A DNA stretch of 64,000 nt, taken from the IMG/VR virus record IMGVR_UViG_3300002143_000235, positions 124,001-188,000 of that record; one strand, written 5' to 3'. Below, one piece after another: positions 800 to 41,098 of the stretch. Within the stretch, counting starts at the first letter, position 1. Each line of letters begins with the position of its first letter. The notes beneath the pieces were generated by a model. That model saw nothing but the letters and a program-made list of their open reading frames with translations, searched no databases and was not told where the DNA came from. The position numbers were made by a program, and so were the translations under genes.

Positions 800-1102
800 T
801 TATTTTATAGTGAATACAAAAGTAACTGTTCCAGCCATTGAACCTACGCCAGTCCATGCAAAATCAGCAAAGCTCGGTTGACCTTTTCCAGTTGTTTTGT
901 CATAAATTTCTTTTCCAAGTCCAGCAAGAATTGCTGTTCCAAATCCTATAAATATTGCTTGTTTTTTACTTGCACCAAGTTTATACGATACAAAAGATGA
1001 TGTATAGGATATTACTGTACCTGCTACAAAATGCTTAACCTTATCTGGTTGAATTTGAGATTGTGATAAAAAAGGTATTAAAAAAAATAATAAGAATTTC
1101 AT
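800..1102 (-). CDS. YfiM/DUF2279-like membrane protein
   Basis: Signal peptide, DKVKHFVAG, GLGKEIYD and SFADFAW motifs. Confidence 0.65.
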   Translation of the reverse strand: MKFLLFFLIPFLSQSQIQPDKVKHFVAGTVISYTSSFVSYKLGASKKQAIFIGFGTAILAGLGKEIYDKTTGKGQPSFADFAWTGVGSMAGTVTFVFTIK

Positions 1103-4446: not shown

Positions 4447-5724
4447 ATGGGAAAAGAGGTTAGACTTATCAAGGTTGATGGTGATGCGAACAATAATAAG
4501 TATTACAACATGGTCGAAAACGGTGATGGTACTTTCACTGCAACTTACGGACGTGTTGGAGCAGCTAAACCGCAGACCGATACTAAACCGATGTCGAAAT
4601 GGGATGCAACATATCGTGAAAAGACGAGTATCAAGAAAGGTTATGTCGATCAGACAGATCTATTCATTGATGAATCAGTAACGATTGATGTTGATGCATC
4701 AACAGGAACTAAAAAGAAATCAGTATTTAAAGATTTTCTTTCATCAAGATCAGCAGCAGTTGTACAAATGGTACGAGATCTTCAAGGTTGGGCAAAGGGA
4801 TCGGTAGAACGAAACTATACCGTAAGTTCTGAAGCTGTAACACAGAAGCAAGTTGACAAAGCACAGGAAACACTTGATCAAATTGTAGGTTTTCAATTAG
4901 ATGCTAACAACATTGCTGAGTTCAACAAACTCTTGCAGACGTTTTACAGTATTGTGCCTCGTAAGATGAAACATGTGAAAACACATCTTGTTGATCCTGA
5001 TTCTGATCTTACTGAACGTAAGAATGAAATCATTACGGAAGAACAGACAACACTCGACGTTATGGCAGGTCAGGTAAAATTGAATGCTGATATGAAAGAC
5101 AGTGATGTTGAAGAAGATCAGGAAGAAGTTGAAACTGACATTTTGAAATCATCTGGTCTTGATGTTATCGAAGTAACTGATGATGCTGTGATCAATAAGA
5201 TCAAAGGTCTGATGGCTGATAACTCACGAAAATTCCGTAAAGCATTTGAGGTTGTAAATACCAAAACACAATCAGCTTACGAGGGACAAATTAAGAAAGC
5301 CAAAAATCAAAAAGAAGAACTTTTCTGGCATGGTTCACGAAATGAAAATTGGTGGTCTATCCTTACAACCGGTTTACTTATTCGTCCATCCAATGCCGTT
5401 TATTCTGGTTCAATGTTTGGTGATGGTATCTACTTTGCAGACAAGTTTCAGAAGTCATTTGGATACACGTCAGGACGTGGTTCATACTGGGCTGGTGGAA
5501 ATGCCAATACAGCAATTTTAGCTCTTTACAATGTGCATGTGGGTGAACAAAAGATCATCAAACGCCATGATTCATCTTGCTACAAATTGTGTCATTCAAT
5601 CCTTGCAAAAGAGAACTGTGATTCTGTATTTGCACAAGGTGGAATTGATCTTCGTAACAATGAATACATTGTTTATCAATCACAACAAAATACAGTTAAG
5701 TATCTTGTAGTTGTTGAGGCATAA
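4447..5724 (+). CDS. PARP-like ADP-ribosyltransferase (WGR, helical regulatory and catalytic domains)
   Basis: N-terminal NNNKYY..YGRVG (WGR), FYSIVPR (regulatory domain), and catalytic H-Y-E motifs FWHGS, GSMFGDGIYFAD..KS.GY and NNEYIVY. Confidence 0.9.
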   Translation: MGKEVRLIKVDGDANNNKYYNMVENGDGTFTATYGRVGAAKPQTDTKPMSKWDATYREKTSIKKGYVDQTDLFIDESVTIDVDASTGTKKKSVFKDFLSSRSAAVVQMVRDLQGWAKGSVERNYTVSSEAVTQKQVDKAQETLDQIVGFQLDANNIAEFNKLLQTFYSIVPRKMKHVKTHLVDPDSDLTERKNEIITEEQTTLDVMAGQVKLNADMKDSDVEEDQEEVETDILKSSGLDVIEVTDDAVINKIKGLMADNSRKFRKAFEVVNTKTQSAYEGQIKKAKNQKEELFWHGSRNENWWSILTTGLLIRPSNAVYSGSMFGDGIYFADKFQKSFGYTSGRGSYWAGGNANTAILALYNVHVGEQKIIKRHDSSCYKLCHSILAKENCDSVFAQGGIDLRNNEYIVYQSQQNTVKYLVVVEA

Positions 5725-5821: not shown

Positions 5822-5853
5822 ATTATATTTGTATTGTTCAATTAATTATTTAT

Positions 5854-6069
5854 ATGTCATTTACAGATTTTTTAGGAGCAGAGCTAAATGTTGGTGATGA
5901 GGTCGTTTTCATTTCCCGTGGATACAGAGACTTCAGTCGTGGAACTGTTGTTTCGTTTACACCACAAAAGGTTCGCATTGCACATATTCATCGCAATATA
6001 CCAGATTATGCAAAGTTACTTTTGCAAGATCCATATCAGTTAATCAAAGTACCCATTCAAACAAAATAA
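5854..6069 (+). CDS. Small SH3/KOW-like hypothetical protein
   Basis: ELNVGDEVVF...GTVVSFTPQKVRI. Follows the TATATTTG promoter at 5824. Confidence 0.7.
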   Translation: MSFTDFLGAELNVGDEVVFISRGYRDFSRGTVVSFTPQKVRIAHIHRNIPDYAKLLLQDPYQLIKVPIQTK

Positions 6070-17584: not shown

Positions 17585-17963
17585 GGGGGTGACCGATTTT
17601 GATTTGCATTTGATATGTAAATAAGCATGTGGTGATAGTATAATTTCACCTTAAAAAGAATACACAACAATAAACGCAAACACTAAAAATTCTGCAGCTT
17701 TCGCACAGATCGCAGCAGACCTTGGAGCAAATGCAGTTACGACTGTAAACGATACGGCTGATATCGTTGAATTTGCAGCCTAAGGTACTCCGAAAGGACT
17801 TAACACAGCACAAGAGGTTCTGACACGCCTGAACAAATGTGTCAACAAAGTTTTGTATGTCTTCACAAGACATTCTATTTGGTCCGCAAAGAAAAGTGGA
17901 ATAAACATGTAGAAGGTTTATCCTATTGCTGTAAAGATCGGGGTTTGATTCCCCGCACCTCCA
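17585..17963 (+). ncRNA. ssrA: tmRNA
   Basis: 5' GGGGGTG pairs with 3' CACCTCC-A (G3:U70). T-arm CGGGG-TTTGATT-CCCCG and GCATG/CATGT helix. Tag ORF 17676-17783 starts GCA after ATAAAC and ends EFAA*. Confidence 0.93.
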
Positions 17964-17964
17964 C

Positions 17965-17996
17965 AAAAAAGGCTTCAAATTCTTGAAGCCTTTTTT
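17965..17996 (+). terminator. Terminator after tmRNA
   Basis: AAAAAAGGCTTCAA-ATTC-TTGAAGCCTTTTTT. Confidence 0.85.
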
Positions 17997-22888: not shown

Positions 22889-23653
22889 ATGAGTTTTATC
22901 CTCAGAACAGTTGATGAACATAACATCAACTACCACACGTACCTTGGAGAAAAGTACGATGTTGTTAATCGTGAACGTTCGCCAGAGTATTTCGAAACAC
23001 TTCTTAACCGAGATCCTTTTGGTGGAGATTCTAAAAAAGCTTTTGTCTATGTCAGTTATAGTGATGGATACAAATACATTCAACAAGGCGAGCATGCCTA
23101 CATTATGATAAGTAATGGTGAAACGTTTGACAATTTAACACCAAAAAGTATTTTTAAACTTCCTAAACTTGATAATACTGAACCGACAAATGAAATACCA
23201 TACCAGTTTGATTCACGTGATATAAAACCAAAAAGCTGGTTGAAATTAGAAAAAGCTACTGTACATAAACTTTGTATTAATAAAGATAATGAAGTATCTA
23301 TAAATACATATAACGAATTTGGTAGAAATGTTGCAAGTTTTTTAAATGTACAAAAAGAAATGCATGAAGCTGGTTATTGTATGATTTTTCCAACATATGA
23401 TGGAAAGTTTATTATTTGTGGTTTTACTGGTCGTGGCTATAATAATGGTATTTATGAATCTGATAATATAAAAAAAATTGGAAGTAAAATACATGTTCTT
23501 TCACAAGCTGATTCAAATGGTCAGTATTATCTTATTCAACTTGATGAATGTGCAGGAGAATTTTTAGTTTCAGATGAAACATGTTCAAGTAGGGTCGGAT
23601 ACGGTCTTTTATTAGATCGTGAAACTGTTTACAATCTTATTTCGGAAAAATAA
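22889..23653 (+). CDS. Hypothetical protein
   Basis: AAAC-N18-TATA at 22806-22831. Confidence 0.7.
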   Translation: MSFILRTVDEHNINYHTYLGEKYDVVNRERSPEYFETLLNRDPFGGDSKKAFVYVSYSDGYKYIQQGEHAYIMISNGETFDNLTPKSIFKLPKLDNTEPTNEIPYQFDSRDIKPKSWLKLEKATVHKLCINKDNEVSINTYNEFGRNVASFLNVQKEMHEAGYCMIFPTYDGKFIICGFTGRGYNNGIYESDNIKKIGSKIHVLSQADSNGQYYLIQLDECAGEFLVSDETCSSRVGYGLLLDRETVYNLISEK

Positions 23654-23754
23654 TAAATTTAAGATGATAGTGAGAGGTATTCAAATGGATACCTCTCTTC
23701 TTTTTGTGTGTTTTTGATTAATATATAGATTAAACAAAAACTACACACCAAGAT

Positions 23755-24318
23755 ATGGCTTTAGCTCACTTTTCAAACGTGTTGAGTCACAACAGACTAG
23801 ACGAAGCAGTTTACAAAGCATTGTTCGAAATTACATTCGACCTTCCACCTATTCTCGGACGTTCTACAACTGAAGTTCAGTTGATGTTAGAGAATGCACG
23901 AAATATTACATTGCCTGTAACTCCAGACCTTGATGTTGTTACACAACGATTCAAATATAGTACACGTGCTTTCGTGGGTCTTCCGTCTCAAACACATAAC
24001 CCAGATATTAATATCAACTTCAACCTTAATGAAAATGATAAGAATGCTGTTTATGTTTGGAACATTTTGAAAGCATGGTATGATTTAGCATGGAACTCAC
24101 AAACTGGTGAAACACATACTAAACGTGATATGGTTGGAAACATCATTGTTAATCAACATAATCGTGAAGGACAAGTTATCAGACGTGTAACTTACAAGAA
24201 CTGCCAGATTATCGGTGTTTCTGAAACTGAACTTAACTGGGATTCTCCTGCAGATATCCTTGAGTGTAGCGGTAAATGGGTTGCTGATTACTGGGAAGAT
24301 CTTTACATCGACGCTTAA
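23755..24318 (+). CDS. Tail tube protein (gp19-like)
   Basis: LFEITF..P, ITLP, WYDL..N..TG, GNIIV...NREG...RRVTY.NC and LNW..........W..DYWED. Confidence 0.8.
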   Translation: MALAHFSNVLSHNRLDEAVYKALFEITFDLPPILGRSTTEVQLMLENARNITLPVTPDLDVVTQRFKYSTRAFVGLPSQTHNPDININFNLNENDKNAVYVWNILKAWYDLAWNSQTGETHTKRDMVGNIIVNQHNREGQVIRRVTYKNCQIIGVSETELNWDSPADILECSGKWVADYWEDLYIDA

Positions 24319-24352: not shown

Positions 24353-24919
24353 ATGATAACAACTATAAATGAGTTTCGACAATATAGTTCTGGACATTTA
24401 GTAGATACTAATAAATTATTTCCTGAGGATAATATCTATGTTGGAAATTTAATTATAGTTGATGAGATGCACGATATGAAGATAACTATTACCACAGTGA
24501 CAGGTAATGTATTTATAGCGTCATCAACAATACCTAAATGGTGTAAAAACATTACCGTGAATGGTGACTTTAATGCTGGTAAAGGTATTATTTCTGTTGC
24601 AACTGAAGGATCTAATATTTTAAAGAATAAAGTAAGTTGGACAGGGTCAATTGATCTTCCAAATCTTATAAGTTTAGTTAATTGTCCAAAGATTATAAAT
24701 GGTGATTGTAATATAGTTGGTAATCTAAATATTGATTTAGAAAATGGACCAAAAGTTGTTACTGGTACATATGTAGTAAGTACTACAAAATCTGTTAAAT
24801 ATATTGAAAGGTACACAGAAGTGAGTAAAAATATCATAACACAGAATGATAATCACAGTGTACGTGATTCTAGAGATCGTTATCATAAACGAAAAGAACG
24901 CTATAAATTTTGGAAATAA
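24353..24919 (+). CDS. Hypothetical protein (possible internal virion protein)
   Basis: MITTINEF N-terminus and SLxNCPK..NGD repeats. Confidence 0.7.
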   Translation: MITTINEFRQYSSGHLVDTNKLFPEDNIYVGNLIIVDEMHDMKITITTVTGNVFIASSTIPKWCKNITVNGDFNAGKGIISVATEGSNILKNKVSWTGSIDLPNLISLVNCPKIINGDCNIVGNLNIDLENGPKVVTGTYVVSTTKSVKYIERYTEVSKNIITQNDNHSVRDSRDRYHKRKERYKFWK

Positions 24920-25014
24920 CATTTTTAATGAATTACAAAGGACCTTCGGGTCTTTTTTTTATTTTAAACAAATTCATAATCTGTGTCTATAAATTGAAAA
25001 GGTCCTGATGATGG

Positions 25015-25653
25015 ATGAAAGCACAAACACAAGAAAAACAAACGGTTGAAGCAACAACCTTAACAAAAAAAGAACTCTGTATCCTTAAACAAGGAAAACA
25101 GATTGTTACAGAAGAACAATTTGCAGTATGCTACATGACAGCTAAATGTCAACTCAAAAACCGAACACCTGAATTTGGTATCTACAACAAAAATTTGGCT
25201 GCTGAATGTGGTATGAATCCAGAGACATTCAGACGTACTGTTGAAAAATTTAAACTTGTTATTACGGGTAAAGATGAAGATCCATCTGAAACAGATAAAG
25301 AGGCAATTTATCCAAAAATCAGAATAGCTTATAACAAGTTTATAGAATTACTTGATGAGACTGTATACGATTTTGCTGAACGTTCGTTTACAGAAGAAAA
25401 CAGAAACATCGGTTACGAAATGGCATTGGAGAAAGCAGAGCAACAAGATAAGTATGCAGCTGAATATAAGAAACGTGATGCTGAAATAAAGAACAAAGTA
25501 ACATTACTATTCAATTCACTTAATAGTGTCTTTAAAGATGCTACAAAAGCAAAACGTCAAGCAATCAATAAGGTTGCAAATGAATCAAATGTAAGTGTTG
25601 AAAGAGTGCTTGGTGTTTGGAATAAAGATGAGATGTTGAAAAAAATATCATAA
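25015..25653 (+). CDS. Hypothetical protein (possible HTH)
   Basis: AAAC-N18-TATA at 24966-24991. NLAAECGMNPETFRRTV resembles a helix-turn-helix. Confidence 0.7.
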   Translation: MKAQTQEKQTVEATTLTKKELCILKQGKQIVTEEQFAVCYMTAKCQLKNRTPEFGIYNKNLAAECGMNPETFRRTVEKFKLVITGKDEDPSETDKEAIYPKIRIAYNKFIELLDETVYDFAERSFTEENRNIGYEMALEKAEQQDKYAAEYKKRDAEIKNKVTLLFNSLNSVFKDATKAKRQAINKVANESNVSVERVLGVWNKDEMLKKIS

Positions 25654-25670: not shown

Positions 25671-25696
25671 AAACAATTACATATATAGATTGTATA
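25671..25696 (+). promoter_or_regulatory. AAAC-N18-TATA promoter driving leader ORF and tRNA array
   Basis: AAAC at 25671-25674 and TATA at 25693-25696. Confidence 0.7.
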
Positions 25697-25705
25697 ACTA
25701 ACGAA

Positions 25706-25777
25706 ATGAAGAACCTGATAACATTAACGATTATTACCCTATGTACTTTGATGTGCAACGGTCTTGTCGTGAGTTAA
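25706..25777 (+). CDS. Putative attenuator leader peptide MKNLITLTIITLCTLMCNGLVVS
   Basis: Codons 4-17 are all Leu/Ile/Thr/Cys/Met (13 distinct codons of 14). The 3' end is complementary to the terminator 5' arm. Confidence 0.8.
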   Translation: MKNLITLTIITLCTLMCNGLVVS

Positions 25778-25837
25778 TGTTTGAAAGAAAATATTGATAA
25801 GTGATAAGACCGGAACTGAAAAGTTTCGGTTTTTTTT
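25759..25837 (+). terminator. Attenuator: alternative antiterminator and terminator
   Basis: Terminator AAGACCGGAAC-TGAAAA-GTTTCGGTTTT plus T-run (25806-25837). Antiterminator CGGTCTTGTC (25759-68) pairs with GATAAGACCG (25803-12). Confidence 0.8.
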
Positions 25838-25897
25838 GTCTTAGTATGTCGTAGATTGAAAAATGTTTCGTATATTTGTCAAACAAAACAAATAGAT

Positions 25898-26128
25898 ATG
25901 GGATATTCAAATGAAATCAAGCCTACGTGCCGACTAAGTGAGATTAAAGATCGCACAGCTGTAAACGGTGAAGTATTCGTAGTTCGAGATACAAATAACA
26001 AAGCAGCGGCTTTGGTTTATGCTAACGATGGTGATAATAACTCAGATCGCGTACGATCAGCATTTGCTAAAAGTACAGGAGTAAAATTCACTGATACACG
26101 TTGTTCACGTTTGAAAAACGTTAAGTAA
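25898..26128 (+). CDS. Small basic hypothetical protein (paralog of 1194-1499)
   Basis: TATATTTG at 25871 upstream. Start MGYSNEIK. Confidence 0.7.
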   Translation: MGYSNEIKPTCRLSEIKDRTAVNGEVFVVRDTNNKAAALVYANDGDNNSDRVRSAFAKSTGVKFTDTRCSRLKNVK

Positions 26129-26130
26129 AC

Positions 26131-26140
26131 GTTCATTGAC
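26131..26140 (+). promoter_or_regulatory. boxA-like element preceding tRNA array
   Basis: GTTCATTGAC, identical to 17571-17580. Confidence 0.55.
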
Positions 26141-26215
26141 ATAATGGTAATTGAATACATATTACTCGGTAAAAGTGCGAACTTTACGTAACACGAATCC
26201 TGAGAGTATGTATAT

Positions 26216-26301
26216 GGGCCGATGGTGGAATTGGTAGACACGTCGCGTTTAAGCCGCGATGCTCCGTAAGGGGCGTGTGGGTTCGACTCCCACTTGGCCT
26301 A
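26216..26301 (+). tRNA. tRNA-Leu(TAA)
   Basis: Cloverleaf with TCGCG-TT TAA GC-CGCGA and a long variable arm. No encoded CCA. Confidence 0.95.
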
Positions 26302-26420
26302 CACAAACACTAAACACCAATTACTGAAACAGAGTGTACAATCTGTGTAAAGAAATGTCGATAAAAAACAATACTGTGGTGCTTGGTATTGGAGACGGCG
26401 AAATTAAAGCGCTAAGATAT

Positions 26421-26501
26421 TGTGAGTGAGAGAAGCTGGTCACTTGTTGTTCGTATGGGTTCAGAAACCAAAGATCATCGGTTCGAATCCGACACTCACT
26501 A
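26421..26501 (+). tRNA. Atypical tRNA, anticodon CAG (Leu?), possibly degenerate
   Basis: Acceptor TGTGAGT/ACTCACT with a 1:72 mismatch, expanded D region, weak stem ATGGG-TT CAG AA-ACCAA, short variable loop and a good T-arm. Confidence 0.55.
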
Positions 26502-26578
26502 CTAATTGAACGCTGTAAAGCAAACTGAAGTTCTGTGAATCAATTCATTTTAGAATTGAAAGAGTTAATAAGTAAATT

Positions 26579-26662
26579 GGCCGTGTGGTGGAATTGGTAG
26601 ACACGCCATCTTGAGGGGGTGGTGCTCGTAAGAGCGTGTGGGTTCGAATCCCACCATGGTCA
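26579..26662 (+). tRNA. tRNA-Leu(GAG)
   Basis: CCATC-TT GAG GG-GGTGG with a long variable arm. Confidence 0.95.
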
Positions 26663-26737
26663 CTTCTGAGGATTTAGTATTTAACGTAGAGCTGGATCAA
26701 CGGTAAAATAACAAGTTGGATGAGAAGACAACAATTT

Positions 26738-26811
26738 AGTCGTATAGCTCAGTTGGTTAGAGCACCACACTGATAATGTGGGGGTCGCAAGTTCAAGTCT
26801 TGCTATGACTA
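26738..26811 (+). tRNA. tRNA-Ile(GAT)
   Basis: CCACA-CT GAT AA-TGTGG. Confidence 0.95.
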
Positions 26812-26813
26812 CG

Positions 26814-27023
26814 AAATACCTGCTGAAGACGATCAGTAATGGATAAAGGGTGGAGCTGTTATATGATAAGCCATCTCGAATGGAGATGTGTAACGGAAGA
26901 CCACGACACTATAGTTTTAACCAGCAAAACGTTGGTCGTTGTAGGAAAAGAGACTGATTAAAAGCAAACTCACCGACCGGGAGATGAAAACAACTCTTGA
27001 TTCGCTGGAATGGACAGGTATTT
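26814..27023 (+). ncRNA. Unclassified structured RNA (about 210 nt)
   Basis: Closing helix AAATACCTG/CAGGTATTT, internal GATCAGT/ACTGATT and CATCTC/GAGATG stems. GC-richer than the genome and not in the ORF track. Confidence 0.55.
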
Positions 27024-27028
27024 TATTT

Positions 27029-27100
27029 AGGCGCGTAGTAGAACGGTTATCACGCATGACTGATAATCATGTAATGGGAGTTCGATTCTCCCCGTGCCTA
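27029..27100 (+). tRNA. tRNA-Ile(GAT), second divergent copy
   Basis: CATGA-CT GAT AA-TCATG. Confidence 0.9.
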
Positions 27101-27219
27101 CACTAAAGATGGTTGACCACATAATAGCATTGTGTTAAAAATTGGGATAAGATGTCACCCAGTAGGAAGGAAAGTCTAGCAACGAAACCTGCTTAGTATT
27201 TGAAACGTAAATACAAACT

Positions 27220-27269
27220 GCTCGTGTGGTGGAATTGGTAGACACACAAAATACTTGTGTGTCTACCAA
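27220..27269 (+). pseudogene. 5' fragment of a Leu-type tRNA with 15-bp inverted duplication
   Basis: GCTCGTG-TGGTGGAATTGGTAGACAC then a perfect inverted repeat TTGGTAGACACACAA/TTGTGTGTCTACCAA (27235-27269). Confidence 0.7.
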
Positions 27270-27298
27270 ACTTCTTAAAAAACATATGTATATTATAC

Positions 27299-27754
27299 AT
27301 GTGGAGCAGGAATTATATTACAGATGAACAAATAATAGAAGCAGTTAAATTATCTAAAACAATGAGCGAAGCTGCAGCTATTGTTAAATTAAAATTTGAA
27401 ACATTTAAACGTAGAGCACAACATTTAGATATTTATAAACCAAATCAATATCGGAAAGGAATTAAACGTTCTGAAAGTGAATTTGAAAAACAAACAATAC
27501 CACTTGAAGAAATATTGAATGGAAAACACCCATCTTATAATACATCAAGATTACGAAAACGATTAATTAAAGCAGGATTAAAAGAAAATAAATGTGAAGA
27601 AAAAGATTGTACTGTTTCAGATTGGAAAGGTAAATCATTAACATGTGAACTTCATCATATTGATGGTGATAGAACAAATCACAAGTTAAATAATTTACAA
27701 ATAATTTGTCCAAATTGTCATAGCCAAACTGATAGTTTTGCACGAAGAAAATAA
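27299..27754 (+). mobile_element. Free-standing HNH homing endonuclease in tRNA array
   Basis: ELHHIDGDRTNHKLNNLQIICPNCHSQT with an N-terminal HTH-like region. Confidence 0.85.
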
Positions 27755-27757
27755 TAT

Positions 27758-27831
27758 AGCTACATAGCCCAATTGGAAGAGGCAATAGATTTAGAATCTA
27801 TATAGTGTGGGTTCGAGTCCCACTGTGGCTA
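27758..27831 (+). tRNA. tRNA-Leu(TAG) with short variable loop
   Basis: ATAGA-TT TAG AA-TCTAT with a 5-nt variable region. Confidence 0.85.
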
Positions 27832-27835
27832 CAAC

Positions 27836-27918
27836 GGCAGGTGAGATGTATTATTCTCTGAAAAGTTAGACTGCAACAGACTGTTGAGAAGCAGTGGCAT
27901 TGTTGGTGTTAGCCCAAC
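27836..27918 (+). ncRNA. tRNA-like structured element (T-arm-like hairpin)
   Basis: GATGT/GCATT helix enclosing an ACTGTT-GAGA-AGCAGT hairpin, then GTTGG-TGTTAGC-CCAAC. Confidence 0.4.
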
Positions 27919-27969
27919 TAGGGAAAAGTCCCCGAATGAGAGTTCCTTTCACGCTGGTGGTAAACGTGT

Positions 27970-28054
27970 TTTATGTAAAAGCGATCAGTTTGACTGAGTA
28001 TAAAAACGTCTAGCACAGTTGAAAGATAAGACGTTCTAATTGTTTTTACATAAA
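27970..28054 (+). ncRNA. Unclassified stem-closed RNA (about 85 nt)
   Basis: 16-bp closing helix TTTATGTAAAAGCGAT/ATTGTTTTTACATAAA, with internal TCAGT/ACTGA and AACGTCT/AGACGTT. Confidence 0.5.
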
Positions 28055-28059
28055 TAAAT

Positions 28060-28136
28060 GCTTCGTTATACCCTCATGCTTATACCATGTAGAAAGGTTA
28101 GTCTGGTTCACGTTGGTTCAAATCCAACACGAAGTA
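28060..28136 (+). ncRNA. tRNA-like RNA with rearranged arms, TAT anticodon-like loop
   Basis: Acceptor GCTTCGT/ACGAAGT-A and canonical T-arm. The CATG-CT TAT AC-CATG hairpin precedes a D-loop-like AGTCTGGT. Confidence 0.6.
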
Positions 28137-28146
28137 CAAGCATAAA

Positions 28147-28171
28147 GATGGTTCGACTCCATCCAGGCCTA
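28147..28171 (+). pseudogene. Orphan tRNA 3' fragment (T-arm plus acceptor strand)
   Basis: GATGG-TTCGACT-CCATC-CAGGCCT-A with no matching 5' half nearby. Confidence 0.6.
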
Positions 28172-28188
28172 CAAATAAAGAATTGAAA

Positions 28189-28326
28189 ATGAATAAGAAA
28201 TTGATACAACGAATTGAAGAAATCTTCGAACAAAAGTTACAATCGAAGACAGGTTGGGGTCGCAACGAGATCCTGGCACTTCACAAAGAAGCAGTTAATG
28301 AAGCTCTTTTAGAGTTAATTGACTAA
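28189..28326 (+). CDS. Small hypothetical protein (45 aa)
   Basis: MNKKLIQRIEEIFEQKLQSKTGWGRNEIL... with an A-rich leader. Confidence 0.65.
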   Translation: MNKKLIQRIEEIFEQKLQSKTGWGRNEILALHKEAVNEALLELID

Positions 28327-28330
28327 AAAT

Positions 28331-28402
28331 GCTGGAATAGTATAATGGTTATTATATCTGTTTTGTAATCAGGTGATCACAGTTCGATCCTGTGTTCCAG
28401 CT
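28331..28402 (+). tRNA. tRNA-Thr(TGT)
   Basis: GCTGGAA/TTCCAGC acceptor and TT TGT AA loop. Confidence 0.9.
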
Positions 28403-28528
28403 CTGATATGCCACGTAAGCCTCTACAAGTATGCTCAAACCGCGGACGTTAGGTAATCTGTCTGAGGTACCAGAGGACAGATTGAAAAGATACGGAGTTG
28501 TGAATCTCGAGGGCTAAAATCACAAACT

Positions 28529-28600
28529 GCCGGAATGGTCGAGCGATTAGGCGTCTCCCTGCAAAGGAGAATCACGGGGGTTTGAATCCCTCTTCCGGCT
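28529..28600 (+). tRNA. tRNA-Cys(GCA)
   Basis: TCTCC-CT GCA AA-GGAGA with U73. Confidence 0.92.
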
Positions 28601-28615
28601 CAATAAATTTAAAAT

Positions 28616-28765
28616 ATGTCAATATTATCAATCATTCTCATCTGTTTAGGTGTTTACGCTGTAATCGGATTAATTGTAGGACTTGTTACAAAGAGTGTTG
28701 CAAACGGTTTTCTCTGGGGTGTTGAATTGATTGGTGAGTTATTTGAAAATATTGATTTCGATTAA
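28616..28765 (+). CDS. Small membrane protein (49 aa)
   Basis: MSILSIILICLGVYAVIGLIVGLV... hydrophobic. Confidence 0.6.
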   Translation: MSILSIILICLGVYAVIGLIVGLVTKSVANGFLWGVELIGELFENIDFD

Positions 28766-28769
28766 AAAT

Positions 28770-28841
28770 GTTGGTGTGTCCGAATAGTTATGGTACTGGT
28801 CTGCAAAACCAGTTAAGTAGGCGCAAGTCCTACCACCAACT
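28770..28841 (+). tRNA. tRNA-Cys(GCA), second copy with atypical T-loop
   Basis: CTGGT-CT GCA AA-ACCAG, T-loop CGCAAGT, U73. Confidence 0.85.
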
Positions 28842-28855
28842 CAAATAAATTAAGA

Positions 28856-29023
28856 ATGGTACTTTACATTATTTTAGCAGCACTCATTTACATCATTATA
28901 AGCGTGATAGTTTATTTCATTATGCAAAATGAAGAATCTGATAAGAAATGGTTATGGACAATCTTTTGGCCGATTGCACTTGGATTTGAGCTTTTAGCAA
29001 ATAGTATGTGGTTTTTCTTCTGA
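28856..29023 (+). CDS. Small membrane protein (55 aa)
   Basis: MVLYIILAALIYIIISVIVYF...IFWPIAL. TGATG coupling to the next gene. Confidence 0.6.
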   Translation: MVLYIILAALIYIIISVIVYFIMQNEESDKKWLWTIFWPIALGFELLANSMWFFF

Positions 29024-29433
29024 TGAGATACATTTTTACAGATATTGATGGAGTTCTTCAGATAAAGAATCCTAAAAAGTGGGATAAGAAGTGTTGTGCT
29101 TTGTATAATAAGCTTTGTAACGAGCTTGATTTGAAAGCTGTTATAACTTCTACTTGGAGAGTACGATACAGTGTTAGAGAGCTTCAAAACATCTTTTATG
29201 ATCAAGGTATTGATGTAGAAATTGTTGGTGTAACTGATGTATTAGGAATTGATCGTGGTGAAGAAATCTTGAACTACATTCGAGATAACAGTGTAAGTGA
29301 ATATGTTGTGATCGATGATAATGTTAGAGACATAATACCATTTGTAAATAATGTTGTAGGTATCGATAAATCATATATTGGACTTACAGAAGAAAATTGT
29401 AAAGAAATTAAAAAAATATTTAGTAATGATTGA
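29023..29433 (+). CDS. HAD domain of Swiss-Army-Knife RNA-repair type (HAD_SAK_2-like)
   Basis: IFTDIDGVL, VITSTWR, RGEEI and YVVIDD. Confidence 0.8.
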   Translation: MRYIFTDIDGVLQIKNPKKWDKKCCALYNKLCNELDLKAVITSTWRVRYSVRELQNIFYDQGIDVEIVGVTDVLGIDRGEEILNYIRDNSVSEYVVIDDNVRDIIPFVNNVVGIDKSYIGLTEENCKEIKKIFSND

Positions 29434-29635
29434 ACATAATGGAAAAATTTATGTCGAAGTACGTAGAATCAAGAAGTCAACATTTGAGACAGGTCTTGAA
29501 GGTGTAAAAAAATATATGGAGCACATTAAGGCTGAACATGTATTACAAGATGCTGAGTATTTCATCTTTGTTAATTTTGTTGATGATGTAGAATTTGAAA
29601 TGGTTGAAGAACCAGTTGTCGATGAGACAGCATAA
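29426..29635 (+). CDS. Hypothetical protein
   Basis: Coupled ORF starting MIEHNGK. Confidence 0.65.
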   Translation: MIEHNGKIYVEVRRIKKSTFETGLEGVKKYMEHIKAEHVLQDAEYFIFVNFVDDVEFEMVEEPVVDETA

Positions 29636-29644
29636 AATAAATAT

Positions 29645-29715
29645 GGCAATATAGTTCAAGGGTAGAACGGTGGAATCATAACCCACTAATTTCAGTTCGA
29701 GTCTGAATATTGCTA
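29645..29715 (+). tRNA. tRNA with CAT anticodon (Met or Ile2)
   Basis: GGCAATA/TATTGCT-A and GTGGA-AT CAT AA-CCCAC. Confidence 0.88.
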
Positions 29716-29797
29716 CTTTGACTTTTTAGTGAAACAGATTTCATATAACTGGTCTAAAGGAAGAAAAAATTAAATTAAAATTAATACCTGTGTATCA

Positions 29798-39604: not shown

Positions 39605-41098
39605 ATGGAAAAGTCACATGTAAAGATACTTAATAGTAACCCAGTAAAAGCTGAGAATCGTCTCAAAAAAGAGATAGAAAAAATTCAATCACTCATAAAA
39701 AAATATGAGAATGATGAAGATCCTTATTCTAAACTTGAACAAGCTCTTAGAACAATTCGTAACAAAAGTAATGATGCAATTAGATTATGGATTATTGCAA
39801 ATGCTCTTGATAATCTTGAAATGTCTGATATAGCTTTAGAATTTAAAGTAAAAGCTGATGAATTGGGTTACAGTGTGACGGTTGATGAAAAACGAACTTG
39901 GCCAGAAGAACATCACCAATTAATGTTAAATGTTAATTTCAGATCAAATATTTCAATGAGTGATTTTAAAAAGAACATTGAAAGTTTAATTAGTTCATTT
40001 GATGAGACTAATGAAGCTGGAATTATCGATTATAATTTGGAAGCACATTCTGTAAAAAGTGAAATGGATGCTTCAAATGAAACTGCTAGTACAACTGCTA
40101 GTACAACAACTAATGAAGCTGCTGGTATGACAATAAGATTTACTAAAAATGATCTTAATAAAATGGTATTAAATAGTGATTTTTTCTATATCACTGAAGG
40201 TGATAAATATTTAATACGTTCTGAAAAAACATATAACAATGAAAATCTTGGAATTTGGGATTCTTTAAAAGAAGAGTTAACTGTTATTTATGCAAATTTG
40301 TTAAAGTGGCTTAAACAAAATTCTTATATTAATTCTAATCATAATGAGGGTCAAGAGTTTATTTATAATGAAAAAGATCTTCAACCTTGGAGCATGTTTC
40401 AACAAACATCTGATGAAGAACGTGCTAAACCAGAATATACAACAACGGCAGTTTTAAAAATGACACAAGACGTTCCTATCTTACGTTTTGCTTATTCACA
40501 ACTTACAAGTGGTGATAATGATAAAGATGCAAAAATGATTTATAATACGTACATCAAGTCTGATGATGATTTAGTTGATAAACTTAAAACTTATGAATCA
40601 TACGTAATGTCTATTTATGAATTTGTAAGCAACTCACCGTATGCTGAAATTGTTTATGATACACTTACGGCATACCAAGTTGAACCATCTGATGAAGATA
40701 CAAAGAAATTATTATCTCTTGTAGTAAACAAAATGACGCGCGCGCTTACAAAGCAGATTGAGTACGAACGTTCAGTATTTGCTCTTTACACATCAGATGT
40801 CAAACAATCACTTTATGATACATTTAAAGATATGGATGTAATTGATATTGTTGAACAATTTAAAAAATCTGGATTTGATATAGACAATGTTGATGCATTA
40901 AATTTTGATGCAGAAAATATATTAAATCTTCCTGATGCTGCAAAAAATCTAGTAAGAGACACAATTAAAAGTGTTGATTATACAGATGCTCTTTATTTAG
41001 ATGATAGCCTTGCAACAATTGTTTATACAACAATGATTGCAATAATTTTAAAAGAAATGGTTGGATTAAGTATTACAAAATCAGAAACAACAATATGA
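39605..41098 (+). CDS. Hypothetical protein (possible internal head protein)
   Basis: Repeated xNE sites and VMSIYEFV. ATATATA upstream. Confidence 0.65.
   Translation: MEKSHVKILNSNPVKAENRLKKEIEKIQSLIKKYENDEDPYSKLEQALRTIRNKSNDAIRLWIIANALDNLEMSDIALEFKVKADELGYSVTVDEKRTWPEEHHQLMLNVNFRSNISMSDFKKNIESLISSFDETNEAGIIDYNLEAHSVKSEMDASNETASTTASTTTNEAAGMTIRFTKNDLNKMVLNSDFFYITEGDKYLIRSEKTYNNENLGIWDSLKEELTVIYANLLKWLKQNSYINSNHNEGQEFIYNEKDLQPWSMFQQTSDEERAKPEYTTTAVLKMTQDVPILRFAYSQLTSGDNDKDAKMIYNTYIKSDDDLVDKLKTYESYVMSIYEFVSNSPYAEIVYDTLTAYQVEPSDEDTKKLLSLVVNKMTRALTKQIEYERSVFALYTSDVKQSLYDTFKDMDVIDIVEQFKKSGFDIDNVDALNFDAENILNLPDAAKNLVRDTIKSVDYTDALYLDDSLATIVYTTMIAIILKEMVGLSITKSETTI

Follow-up and report, generated by a model that had tools for sequence, protein, structure and literature searches.

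The window analysed here is the whole 64,000-nucleotide stretch taken from IMG/VR virus record IMGVR_UViG_3300002143_000235 (positions 124,001 to 188,000 of that record). Within it, a structural-gene operon ends at 25653 and is followed by a promoter-like motif, a short leader open reading frame (ORF), two overlapping hairpins, a second promoter-like motif, a 76-aa ORF and an array of nine tRNA genes (Table 1). As in described phage tRNA clusters, homing endonucleases and small ORFs lie among the tRNA genes. A first-pass annotation, made from sequence alone, had listed two further tRNA-like genes, and its downstream set is only partly upheld: the nine tRNAs are confirmed, while a TAT-like tRNA at 28060–28136 remains sub-threshold (27 bits, with a gathering score of 29) and a CAG-like tRNA near 26425–26503 is called by neither ARAGORN nor Rfam.

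Table 1. Features of the leader region and the downstream tRNA array (window coordinates)
Feature	Position	Strand	Description
Promoter-like motif TATATAGATT	25682–25691	+	Conserved, late-type, phage-specific; 14 nt upstream of leader ATG; activity inferred
Leader ORF	25706–25777	+	23 codons, ATG start, TAA stop
Sensor codons 4–17	25715–25756	+	Leu, Ile, Thr, Cys and Met only; 13 different codons
Antiterminator hairpin	25759–25812	+	12 + 10 bp (22 bp), −23.1 kcal/mol
Intrinsic terminator	25806–25837	+	12-pair stem, GAAA loop, U8; −14.2 kcal/mol
Host-type promoter-like TATATTTG	25871–25878	+	Bacteroidota −7 box; probable bypass promoter; activity inferred
76-aa ORF	25898–26128	+	Unknown function; between putative attenuator and tRNAs; called as gene in L005–L008
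tRNA array	26216–29716	+	Nine tRNAs, protein genes interspersed; ARAGORN and Rfam agree
tRNA Leu-taa	26216–26302	+	ARAGORN, Rfam
tRNA Leu-gag	26579–26663	+	ARAGORN, Rfam
tRNA Ile-gat (two)	26738–26812 and 27029–27101	+	ARAGORN, Rfam
tRNA Leu-tag	27758–27832	+	ARAGORN, Rfam
tRNA Thr-tgt	28331–28403	+	ARAGORN, Rfam
tRNA Cys-gca (two)	28529–28601 and 28770–28842	+	ARAGORN, Rfam
tRNA cat (Met/CAT)	29645–29716	+	ARAGORN, Rfam
HNH endonuclease	27257–27754		Within array; family search
Small membrane-protein ORFs	28616–28765 and 28856–29023		Within array
HAD_SAK_2 RNA-repair-type domain protein	29008–29433		Within array; family search

The leader ORF is present with every codon that the first-pass annotation had quoted for it, and a recount confirms 13 different codons, restricted to five amino acids, among codons 4–17. 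Phage codon usage would give 8.2 different codons in a run of this length (P ~0.001). For enrichment in the amino-acid set of the array, the leader ranks first among 689 small ORFs in the window, and a scan of all six reading frames finds only one other Leu/Ile/Thr/Cys/Met run of at least 14 residues, a poly-Leu repeat. The array could decode all 14 sensor codons if U34 tRNAs read four-codon boxes, and 12 of the 14 under strict wobble. The leader peptide is hydrophobic, begins Met-Lys-Asn and carries Cys at positions 13 and 17; family searches return no match for it.

Two hairpins compete at the end of the leader. The 5′ strand of the antiterminator (25759–25782) covers leader codons 18–23 and extends slightly beyond the stop codon, and its 3′ strand (25789–25812) shares bases with the 5′ arm of the terminator, whose stem (25806–25833) runs directly into U8. 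The region as a whole folds with a z-score of −5.6, and folding computation shows the two structures to be mutually exclusive, with the antiterminator the more stable (Table 1). In constrained folds with no ribosome, or with a ribosome stalled at codon 10, antiterminator pairs have a probability of ~1.0 and the C-G core pairs of the terminator 0.0; the terminator instead has a probability of ~1.0 once the ribosome is placed at codon 17 or on the stop codon. The pairing of 25759–25770 with 25801–25812 proposed in the first-pass annotation holds, as the outer part of this longer hairpin, and its suggested check of folding with and without 25759–25770 masked switches as predicted: the unconstrained fold retains the antiterminator, and masking brings the terminator core pairs to a probability of ~1. 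No upstream pause or anti-antiterminator (1:2) hairpin is evident, the sensor region forming only weak hairpins of 5–7 bp, and the untranslated default is therefore readthrough. Rfam leader families (Thr_leader, His_leader, Leu_leader, Trp_leader and others) give no match between 24000 and 31000 at E values up to 1, where only tRNAs are found, and none reaches its gathering score anywhere in the window; scans of the region and of the window also find no T-box riboswitch (Stem I, specifier loop and T-box sequence). The attenuator criteria of a leader ORF enriched in codons for the amino acids of the array, a terminator and a competing antiterminator are thus all met; that of a 1:2 hairpin is not.

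Upstream of the leader, an AAAC-N18-TATA promoter had been described in the first-pass annotation. This description is not confirmed, and the conserved motif TATATAGATT fits better. The motif is invariant in the relatives L005–L008 and also precedes the tail-tube gene at 23722, and close variants lie directly 5′ of two ORFs, with starts at 39605 and 54333.

The leader region is strongly conserved. In L005 and L008, identity over positions 25700–25799 is 97%, against 75–90% for the flanking genes, and the leader ORF differs from its counterparts in L005–L008 by only 2 substitutions in 72 nt: N3K, in L005–L007 only, and a synonymous Leu change from CTA to CTC, common to L005–L008. Conservation is at the nucleotide level, third codon positions included, and synonymous sites have changed less than those of the flanking genes. 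Substitutions in the terminator leave its stem paired in relatives. The close relatives are too similar to reveal compensatory stem changes, and one substitution, T25802G (L002 and L008), costs a base pair. In L009, a distant relative in which the neighbouring protein is only 54% identical and the array is inverted, the same promoter motif lies upstream of the array and is followed by an ORF of 28 codons that contains the run ICTMIMTMINTI, and next by a segment that could pair with the 5′ arm of a terminator; Thr, Met, Ile and Cys tRNAs directly follow.

The arrangement of a short ORF enriched in the amino acids of the downstream tRNAs, an antiterminator and a terminator recurs ahead of tRNA blocks in about 25 cases, spanning at least seven unrelated viral lineages; two published huge phages, LR756502 and LR745206, are among them. 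In L016, the sensor run ISIHINSIMNWRRNSS precedes His, Trp, Ser, Asn, Arg, Ile and Met tRNAs. Three genomes (L191, L197 and L214) have two to four different blocks each, every block with its own matching leader, such as PQPMQDQD ahead of Gln/Pro/Asp and EFFAAERAAAEFAAAAFEAF ahead of Glu/Ala/Phe. In the two huge phages, SSRSRSS precedes Arg/Ser, YESYYEE precedes Glu/Tyr and ISIAVIGNGAGAI precedes Ile/Gly/Met/Gly, with Gly/Ala further on. The leaders resemble their own tRNAs in composition, and not each other in sequence or hydrophobicity. Most sampled tRNA arrays have no such leader, and a composition-matched ORF (Cys/Ser) in L083 has no terminator.

Several statistics bear on this match. First, in a screen of 73 informative arrays made without prior choice of ORF, the small ORF that best matches the amino acids of the array lies directly upstream of it in 15, compared with 3.5 expected (Poisson P ~5e-6). 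Second, among ORFs in the stretches upstream of arrays, 13 of 937 encoded on the tRNA strand score at least 6, compared with 1 of 827 on the other strand. Third, a terminator follows 21 of 23 high-scoring leaders and only 17 of 300 low-scoring upstream ORFs. Fourth, the terminator 5′ arms pair with their own leaders at a summed −269 kcal/mol, against −181 ± 10 kcal/mol when the leaders are shuffled among units; none of 20,000 permutations attains the observed sum. Finally, the amino-acid set of its own array gives the best score for 11 of 14 leaders. The covariation of leader content with tRNA content across phages that the first-pass annotation had suggested checking is therefore found at the level of amino acids. 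Its proposal of codon-by-codon sensing is not supported: across 13 leaders, codons and anticodons do not match significantly better than the amino-acid match alone predicts (54 of 81 covered versus 47.3 expected, z = 1.65).

Two alternative accounts of the locus can be weighed against these data. In one, the terminator ends the structural operon in the ordinary way, within a structured 3′ untranslated region, and the small ORF is accidental. The terminator does sit at the end of a structural-gene operon, 150 nt past a 212-aa gene and downstream of tail genes, where one is needed regardless, and short ORFs are abundant in AT-rich genomes. However, the leader ranks first among the small ORFs and has its own conserved promoter motif, its synonymous positions are more conserved than those of the flanking genes, the hairpin competes specifically with the terminator and the same combination, with matching composition, recurs in unrelated phages. 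We regard this account as very improbable.

In the other, the leader encodes a functional small hydrophobic membrane peptide, type I toxin-like or lipoprotein-signal-like, with a terminator of its own, and the likeness to the tRNAs is coincidental. The hydrophobicity of the peptide, its Met-Lys-Asn start and the membrane-protein ORFs nearby favour this account. Against it, the L009 counterpart and the other leaders are not hydrophobic, with Ser/Arg, Glu/Tyr, Pro/Gln/Asp and Asn-rich runs that follow tRNA composition and not a shared sequence; the peptide has no family match; and conservation acts on nucleotides, third codon positions included. It too can be held only with great difficulty. A conserved peptide with a hydrophobic helix, the criterion for a type I toxin or small membrane peptide, is not met among the L009 counterpart and the other leaders.

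We consider it likely (probability ~0.8) that 25682–25837 is a ribosome-mediated, leader-peptide transcription attenuator ahead of the phage tRNA array, with translation, stalling and regulation inferred. The comparisons support this reading strongly; there are no expression data and there is no experimental support. The same interpretation in the first-pass annotation is upheld with corrections to the promoter, two tRNAs, the codon level of sensing and the reach of the gating. In the proposed mechanism, a transcript would start at the late-type phage promoter and the 23-codon leader would be translated almost immediately. Codons 4–17 would demand only what the nine downstream tRNAs carry: Leu, Ile, Thr, Cys and Met. 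A ribosome reading them quickly would reach codons 18–23 and the stop codon and cover the antiterminator 5′ strand, so that the terminator would form and transcription would end. If a matching charged tRNA were scarce and the ribosome stalled around codons 4–13, or if no ribosome were present, the more stable antiterminator would form first and sequester the terminator 5′ arm, and RNA polymerase would go on to transcribe the 76-aa ORF and the tRNAs beyond it. The newly made tRNAs would relieve the stall, closing a negative feedback loop on decoding capacity. Candidate triggers are codon-usage mismatch, loss of host tRNAs in infection or anticodon nucleases. That the leader is translated, that its translation is coupled to transcription, which way the switch regulates, whether and when the promoters are active and what the physiological trigger is are all inferred.

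What lies between the terminator and the tRNAs qualifies this scheme. The caveat in the first-pass annotation, that a host-type promoter at 25871 lies downstream of the terminator, holds, and the 76-aa ORF also intervenes; this promoter and ORF lie 340 nt ahead of the first tRNA. The TATATTTG box is invariant in relatives, and the extended motif to which it belongs also lies 14–25 nt ahead of the ATG of the ORFs at 5854, 8530, 10969, 16021 and others. The 76-aa ORF has no match in family searches; a similar small ORF occupies the equivalent position in L016 and L141. With this promoter and ORF in place, only readthrough from the upstream promoter would be gated, and tRNA output may rest mostly on the 25871 promoter. 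The promoter would probably feed the same genes unconditionally, and likely early; what the attenuator adds would then be a late input, given on demand. A stronger form of the objection is that the attenuator is real but minor for the tRNAs, which the 25871 promoter transcribes, and that the switch tunes only the 76-aa ORF or late readthrough, or yields a stable, terminated leader RNA acting in trans; small RNAs derived from attenuators are known in bacteria, for example rnTrpL (PMC6614838). The recurrence of the promoter motif ahead of many ORFs, its invariance and the 76-aa ORF directly after it speak for this account. Against it, the sensor composition fits the tRNAs and not the 76-aa protein, and in L009, L197, L214, LR756502 and others the tRNAs lie 25–90 nt past the terminator with no ORF between. 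We judge a minor role unlikely.

The attenuator reading can be set beside known systems. Leader attenuators that respond to several amino acids include thr (Thr and Ile codons) and ilvGMEDA (Leu/Val/Ile), and others of this kind are ilvBN, leu, his, trp and pheA. Like these enterobacterial attenuators, the phage unit has its regulatory codons clustered in a short ORF upstream, and an antiterminator that overlaps the 3′ end of the ORF and rivals the terminator; a stalled ribosome would likewise lead to readthrough and smooth translation to termination, and the thr and ilv leaders also sense several amino acids. Unlike them, it would regulate tRNAs and not biosynthetic enzymes, so its products would feed back directly on the sensor; it is phage-borne and modular, each tRNA block having a leader of its own for up to five amino acids or more; and it matches no Rfam leader family. 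It also departs from the classical trp design in having no evident 1:2 hairpin and in reading through when untranslated, although the 1:2 feature is trp-type and not universal. In E. coli, the pheST attenuator uses a leader with Phe codons to control phenylalanyl-tRNA synthetase. This too is leader-peptide attenuation of a decoding component in response to the supply of matching charged tRNA, but pheST regulates a bacterial synthetase for one amino acid and not tRNA genes. T-box elements share transcription attenuation, the reading of tRNA status through a codon-like element and translation-related targets; they bind uncharged tRNA directly, without a ribosome, whereas the reader in the phage unit would be the translating ribosome.

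The tRNA clusters of T4, T5, KVP40, mycobacteriophages and huge phages are thought to offset codon mismatch, host tRNA loss and anticodon nucleases. Descriptions of their expression concern promoters and processing, and to our knowledge none involves a translated leader or attenuator; the literature searched holds no prior description of either ahead of phage tRNA genes. The recurrence in unrelated large phages suggests an undescribed viral route to tRNA production when decoding falls short. On a bolder reading, which we also think probable, these units form a widespread modular class of attenuators in large phages: each tRNA block would have its own mini-ORF, antiterminator and terminator, decoding would be measured per amino-acid group and only blocks in short supply would be transcribed. 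If so, the class would act as a tRNA homeostat, and could also be an inducible means of countering anticodon-nuclease defence or the depletion of host tRNAs. The unit in the window would be one member, unusual in sampling 13 different codons; among the leaders compared, such exceptional codon diversity is specific to it.

The unit upstream of the window's tRNA array is likely (probability roughly 0.8) a ribosome-mediated transcription attenuator, in which a short leader ORF enriched in the amino acids of the tRNA block is followed by an antiterminator, a terminator and the tRNAs themselves; this reading rests on no experiment or transcript data. The source is a viral contig of around 314 kb, IMGVR_UViG_3300002143_000235, and the G+C content of the window is 32%. 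The large proteins of the phage are similar to those of two metagenomic huge phages, LR745206 and LR756502; their similarity to proteins of Prevotella Lak and Flavobacterium phages is more distant. Scattered among the tRNAs of the array are an HNH endonuclease, small membrane-protein ORFs and a HAD_SAK_2 protein.

Features of the leader locus, in window positions
Feature	Position	Remark
Tail and baseplate genes	5′ of leader locus	including tail-tube gene, 23755–24318
212-aa gene	ends 25653	upstream of motif and leader
TATATAGATT motif	25682–25691	promoter-like, 5′ of leader ORF
Leader ORF, 23 codons	25706–25777	
Long (antiterminator) hairpin	25759–25812	
Terminator	25806–25837	
TATATTTG box	25871	promoter-like
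76-aa ORF	25898–26128	between terminator and tRNAs
Nine tRNA genes	26216–29716	Leu-taa, Leu-gag, Ile-gat (×2), Leu-tag, Thr-tgt, Cys-gca (×2), anticodon cat (×1)

The antiterminator hairpin (12 + 10 bp, −23.1 kcal/mol) and the terminator (−14.2 kcal/mol by itself) are mutually entangled with the leader: the 5′ strand of the antiterminator spans leader codons 18–23, the stop codon and a few bases past it, and its 3′ strand includes the first seven bases of the terminator 5′ arm. In partition-function folds constrained with a 31-nt ribosome footprint, the antiterminator had a probability of around 1 and the C–G core pairs of the terminator a probability of 0, both without a ribosome and with a ribosome stalled at codon 10. 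With the ribosome at codon 17 or at the stop codon, the antiterminator was not formed and the core pairs reached around 1. The first-pass annotation had proposed this leader peptide, its individual codons and a pairing of leader nucleotides 25759–25770 with 25801–25812, and all of these held; masking 25759–25770, as it had suggested, likewise abolished the antiterminator and brought the terminator core to around 1. The leader region also folds far better than shuffled sequence (z = −5.6). The geometry is that of classical attenuation except in one respect: no strong upstream 1:2 hairpin was seen, so an untranslated leader should give readthrough by default.

The composition of the leader is exceptional within the window. 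When all ATG-initiated ORFs of 12–70 aa on both strands were scored for enrichment in the array's amino acids, the leader ranked first of 689, with a −log10 P of 5.8 compared with 3.8 for the second. In all six frames of the window, just one other run of at least 14 residues is drawn from Leu, Ile, Thr, Cys and Met, and it is a poly-Leu repeat.

Close relatives retain the unit. A DNA similarity search against 50,697 phage records returned tRNA and HNH fragments only and no relatives, and locus searches anchored on the 212-aa and 76-aa proteins returned only the source phage, its strain variant and one short contig; L005–L012 were reached by exact-protein look-ups. Among them are four contigs, the close relatives L005–L008, whose 212-aa protein is 92% or 82% identical to that of the window and whose layout is the same. 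DNA identity with them is 75–90% in the flanking genes and 97% in the block 25700–25799, which is among the most conserved 100-nt bins, exceeded only by a bin upstream of the tail-tube gene. The leader ORF differs from that of the window at just two places: N3K, outside the sensor run, in L005–L007, and a synonymous Leu change within the run, CTA to CTC, in L005–L008. Stem changes mostly preserve pairs, with a single pair broken in both L008 and the strain variant L002; these relatives diverge too little for compensatory changes to show. This pattern of conservation in leader and stems indicates constraint on nucleotides, third codon positions included, which fits a regulatory RNA in which codon identity matters and not an ordinary small protein. 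The leader peptide has no match in Pfam or PHROGs. A 188-aa gene with its own terminator (24937–24956) occupies window positions 24353–24956 and is missing from L005 and L008, an insertion or deletion that lies after the tail-tube gene and before the 212-aa gene.

A distant relative, L009, shares 54% identity in the 212-aa protein and has an inverted tRNA array, whose upstream end therefore lies elsewhere. The first element at that end is the TATATAGATT motif found in the window, followed by a 28-codon ORF with the core ICTMIMTMINTI after three Leu codons. The 3′ part of this ORF contains a segment that repeats the 3′ arm of the terminator and is therefore able to base-pair with its 5′ arm. 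Next come a strong terminator and, around 40 nt on, Thr, Met/cat, Ile and Cys tRNAs. This leader peptide has no sequence similarity to that of the window and is not hydrophobic; composition alone is common to the two.

Units of the same kind occur in unrelated phages, at loci gathered independently of leaders, through a nuclease gene often present in the tRNA regions of phages (80 loci) or an exact three-tRNA-T-loop pattern (119 loci). On the 360-kb contig L016, the array reads His, His, Trp, Ser, Asn (×4), Ser, Arg, Ile, Ile, Ser, Met, Arg, Arg, and the upstream ORF contains ISIHINSIMNWRRNSS; among the tRNAs, Ser-tga, Ser-gct, Ser-gga, Arg-tct and Arg-acg correspond to its codons for Ser and Arg. 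After this leader come a segment, AGGUCAAG, that pairs with the terminator 5′ arm, then the terminator and a 57-aa ORF, as in the window. Single genomes carry several leaders. In L197, TTNLNINLTLNVLCLRR precedes Arg/Leu tRNAs with Asn/Val/Cys/Thr further on, TNTVNINVITITNCVNNTT precedes Asn/Val/Cys/Thr, and PQPMQDQD precedes Gln/Pro/Asp; the 424-kb contig L191 has NTNNTNPNNNP before Asn/Pro/Thr/Tyr and EFFAAERAAAEFAAAAFEAF before Glu/Ala/Phe; and L214 has ETYYYEAYEE before Glu/Tyr and GNGAIAGGG before Gly/Gly/Ala. The published huge phages LR756502 and LR745206 have such units too: Arg/Ser tRNAs follow SSRSRSS, Glu/Tyr tRNAs follow YESYYEE, Ile/Gly/Met/Gly tRNAs (and, at a greater distance, Gly/Ala) follow ISIAVIGNGAGAI, and Asn/Leu/Val/Ile/Thr tRNAs follow NLNMNLNTLTVVNNTL. 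General codon bias could be put forward as the source of leader composition; the presence of several different leaders in one genome excludes it. Judged by promoter type, terminator sequence and G+C content (23–48%), the units form at least seven unrelated groups. The units of L119 and L143 are of the sigma-70 type, and an Asn/Leu/Thr leader family spans LR756502, L197 and L214. By DNA similarity, no cultured relative turned up for the leaders of L119, L141 and L191. Flavobacterium phage MaF61 has no annotated tRNAs in its first 50 kb.

Two loci stand apart from this set. The top ORF of L077, which overlaps a structured region rich in G+C, was left out of the count. In L083, an ORF at 953–1063 (+) ends in a Cys/Ser/Tyr-rich run in which both Cys codons and all but one of the six Ser codons appear. 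A block of Cys, Cys, Ser, Ser, Ser tRNAs begins 30 nt further on, with no terminator between; this match in composition may be chance or another mode of coupling, and we keep it as an exception.

The association holds statistically across arrays. Of 73 informative arrays, 15 had the top-scoring small ORF of their whole locus on the same strand as the first tRNA and no more than 600 nt upstream of it, against 3.5 by chance (Poisson P of around 5 × 10−6). At enrichment scores of at least 5, 6 and 7, there were 22, 13 and 9 of 937 ORFs on the tRNA strand of the upstream stretches, compared with 3, 1 and 0 of 827 on the opposite strand of the identical stretches. A strong intrinsic terminator lies between stop codon and tRNA for 21 of 23 high-scoring ORFs and for 17 of 300 low-scoring ones. 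In the 25 units with terminators, the terminator 5′ arm prefers its own leader (summed −269 kcal/mol versus −181 ± 10 when permuted; 0 of 20,000 permutations equal), and the pairing mostly ends in the final third of the ORF. For 11 of 14 leaders the top score came from the amino-acid set of their own array, the other three favouring closely overlapping sets; since these 14 were picked for high scores, the matrix serves as an illustration of specificity, not as independent evidence. No leader was seen at most sampled phage arrays. Almost every amino acid is represented in the T5-like (LVR16A) and T4-like (AsFcp_2) arrays, leaving the composition test powerless there. The same screen of 120 bacterial tRNA arrays, which has limited power, gave 0 of 221 upstream ORFs at score 6.

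The resolution of the proposed sensing is coarser than the first-pass annotation supposed. Its attenuator reading is supported with corrections, the underlying observation is confirmed, and the covariation of leader and tRNA content that it proposed to test in other phages was seen at the amino-acid level. Its proposal that the phage samples decoding capacity codon by codon is backed only by the window leader, in which 13 different codons occur among 14 non-Met sensor codons, where phage codon usage predicts 8.2 (P of around 0.001); such diversity is not general among leaders. Under strict wobble rules, 54 of 81 informative codons across leaders were covered compared with 47.3 expected (z = 1.65), no significant preference beyond the amino-acid match. 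In the absence of experimental or transcript data, what the comparisons show is sensing per amino acid, not per codon.

Transcription of the array probably has two inputs. TATATAGATT and close variants also precede the tail-tube gene, the only one of these genes with a known function, and ORFs at 22889, 39605 and 54333, from which we infer that the leader's promoter is late-type. In the window the attenuator is not directly adjacent to the tRNAs, and the TATATTTG box downstream of the terminator is invariant in relatives and part of a motif found 14–25 nt before the start codons of many window ORFs. A caveat raised earlier, that a promoter here could bypass the terminator, held, and a second, ungated input to the tRNAs is likely, with promoter activity inferred. 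An extended form of this promoter-like motif, a T-rich stretch followed by TATATTTGT, occurs at 5824, 8500, 10936, 15989, 25871, 29972 and other window positions at the same spacing; its match to the −7 box of Bacteroidota supports a host from that phylum.

Among known systems, the multivalent thr and ilv leaders are the closest match to the mechanism, and pheST is alike in controlling the decoding apparatus. The element is not a T-box and belongs to none of the curated Rfam leader families. Its novelty would lie in the target, tRNA genes with products that read the sensor codons and so feed back on it directly, and also in carriage by phages, a modular plan of one leader per block, and readthrough as the default. 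We found no description of such an element in the full-text literature searched, which did not cover subscription-only papers. If the reading is correct, this would be, to our knowledge and within that literature, the first leader-peptide attenuation of tRNA genes and the first regulatory logic other than promoters proposed for phage tRNA arrays. The choice of tRNAs that a phage carries, and the timing of its need for them, would become open to direct tests, the leader naming the decoding shortages that are monitored. Sensor runs could help to identify ambiguous phage tRNAs (CAT as Met or Ile, and odd Leu and Tyr tRNAs) and mark tRNAs important against tRNA-targeting defences, and the units could serve synthetic biology as compact, modular gauges of codon- or amino-acid-specific translation capacity. 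Because the units are easily found computationally, the claim can be checked at scale.

The array has further peculiarities. Two additional tRNAs listed in the first-pass annotation were not confirmed: a sequence at 28060–28136 with a TAT anticodon loop falls below threshold (Rfam 27 bits versus a gathering score of 29), and one at around 26425–26503, with a perfect 7-bp acceptor stem, a T arm and an aberrant middle, is called by neither tool. L008 has an intact tRNA with anticodon cat at a site homologous to a window tRNA-like sequence. The tRNA with the Leu anticodon TAG (27758–27832) is only 75 nt and, unlike bacterial tRNA-Leu, has no long variable arm, so that its amino-acid identity is uncertain. 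Directly before the HNH homing endonuclease gene (27257–27754) lies a tRNA-Leu 5′ fragment (acceptor and D arm, 27218–27247), and a matching 3′ fragment (T arm and acceptor end) lies around 900 nt downstream at 28146–28172, suggesting that endonuclease activity split a tRNA gene or duplicated part of it. In the strain variant (IMGVR_UViG_3300002138_000147; L002, L004 and L014; for example, L002 11550), the 212-aa gene and leader ORF are identical and the array is rearranged, with extra Thr-tgt genes, one Cys fewer and a CTA-anticodon tRNA (amber-suppressor type) not in the window.

Other RNA-related features were noted. The array of L009 contains a sub-threshold match to archaeal-type RNase P RNA at 5310–5508 (−) (39 bits, gathering score 84, E = 4 × 10−8). 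The window phage encodes a tmRNA at 17585–17966 (+) (Rfam RF00023, 87 bits, full length) that ARAGORN missed; its L005 homologue, called by ARAGORN with tag peptide DTADIVEFAA, sits between ClpP-like and transglycosylase genes. Finally, the protein at 29008–29433, inside the array, carries the HAD domain of ‘Swiss Army Knife’ RNA-repair proteins (PF18143, E = 1 × 10−18), and L005 encodes an RNA 2′-phosphotransferase-like protein at 1–371; together they hint at possible tRNA repair beside tRNA supply.
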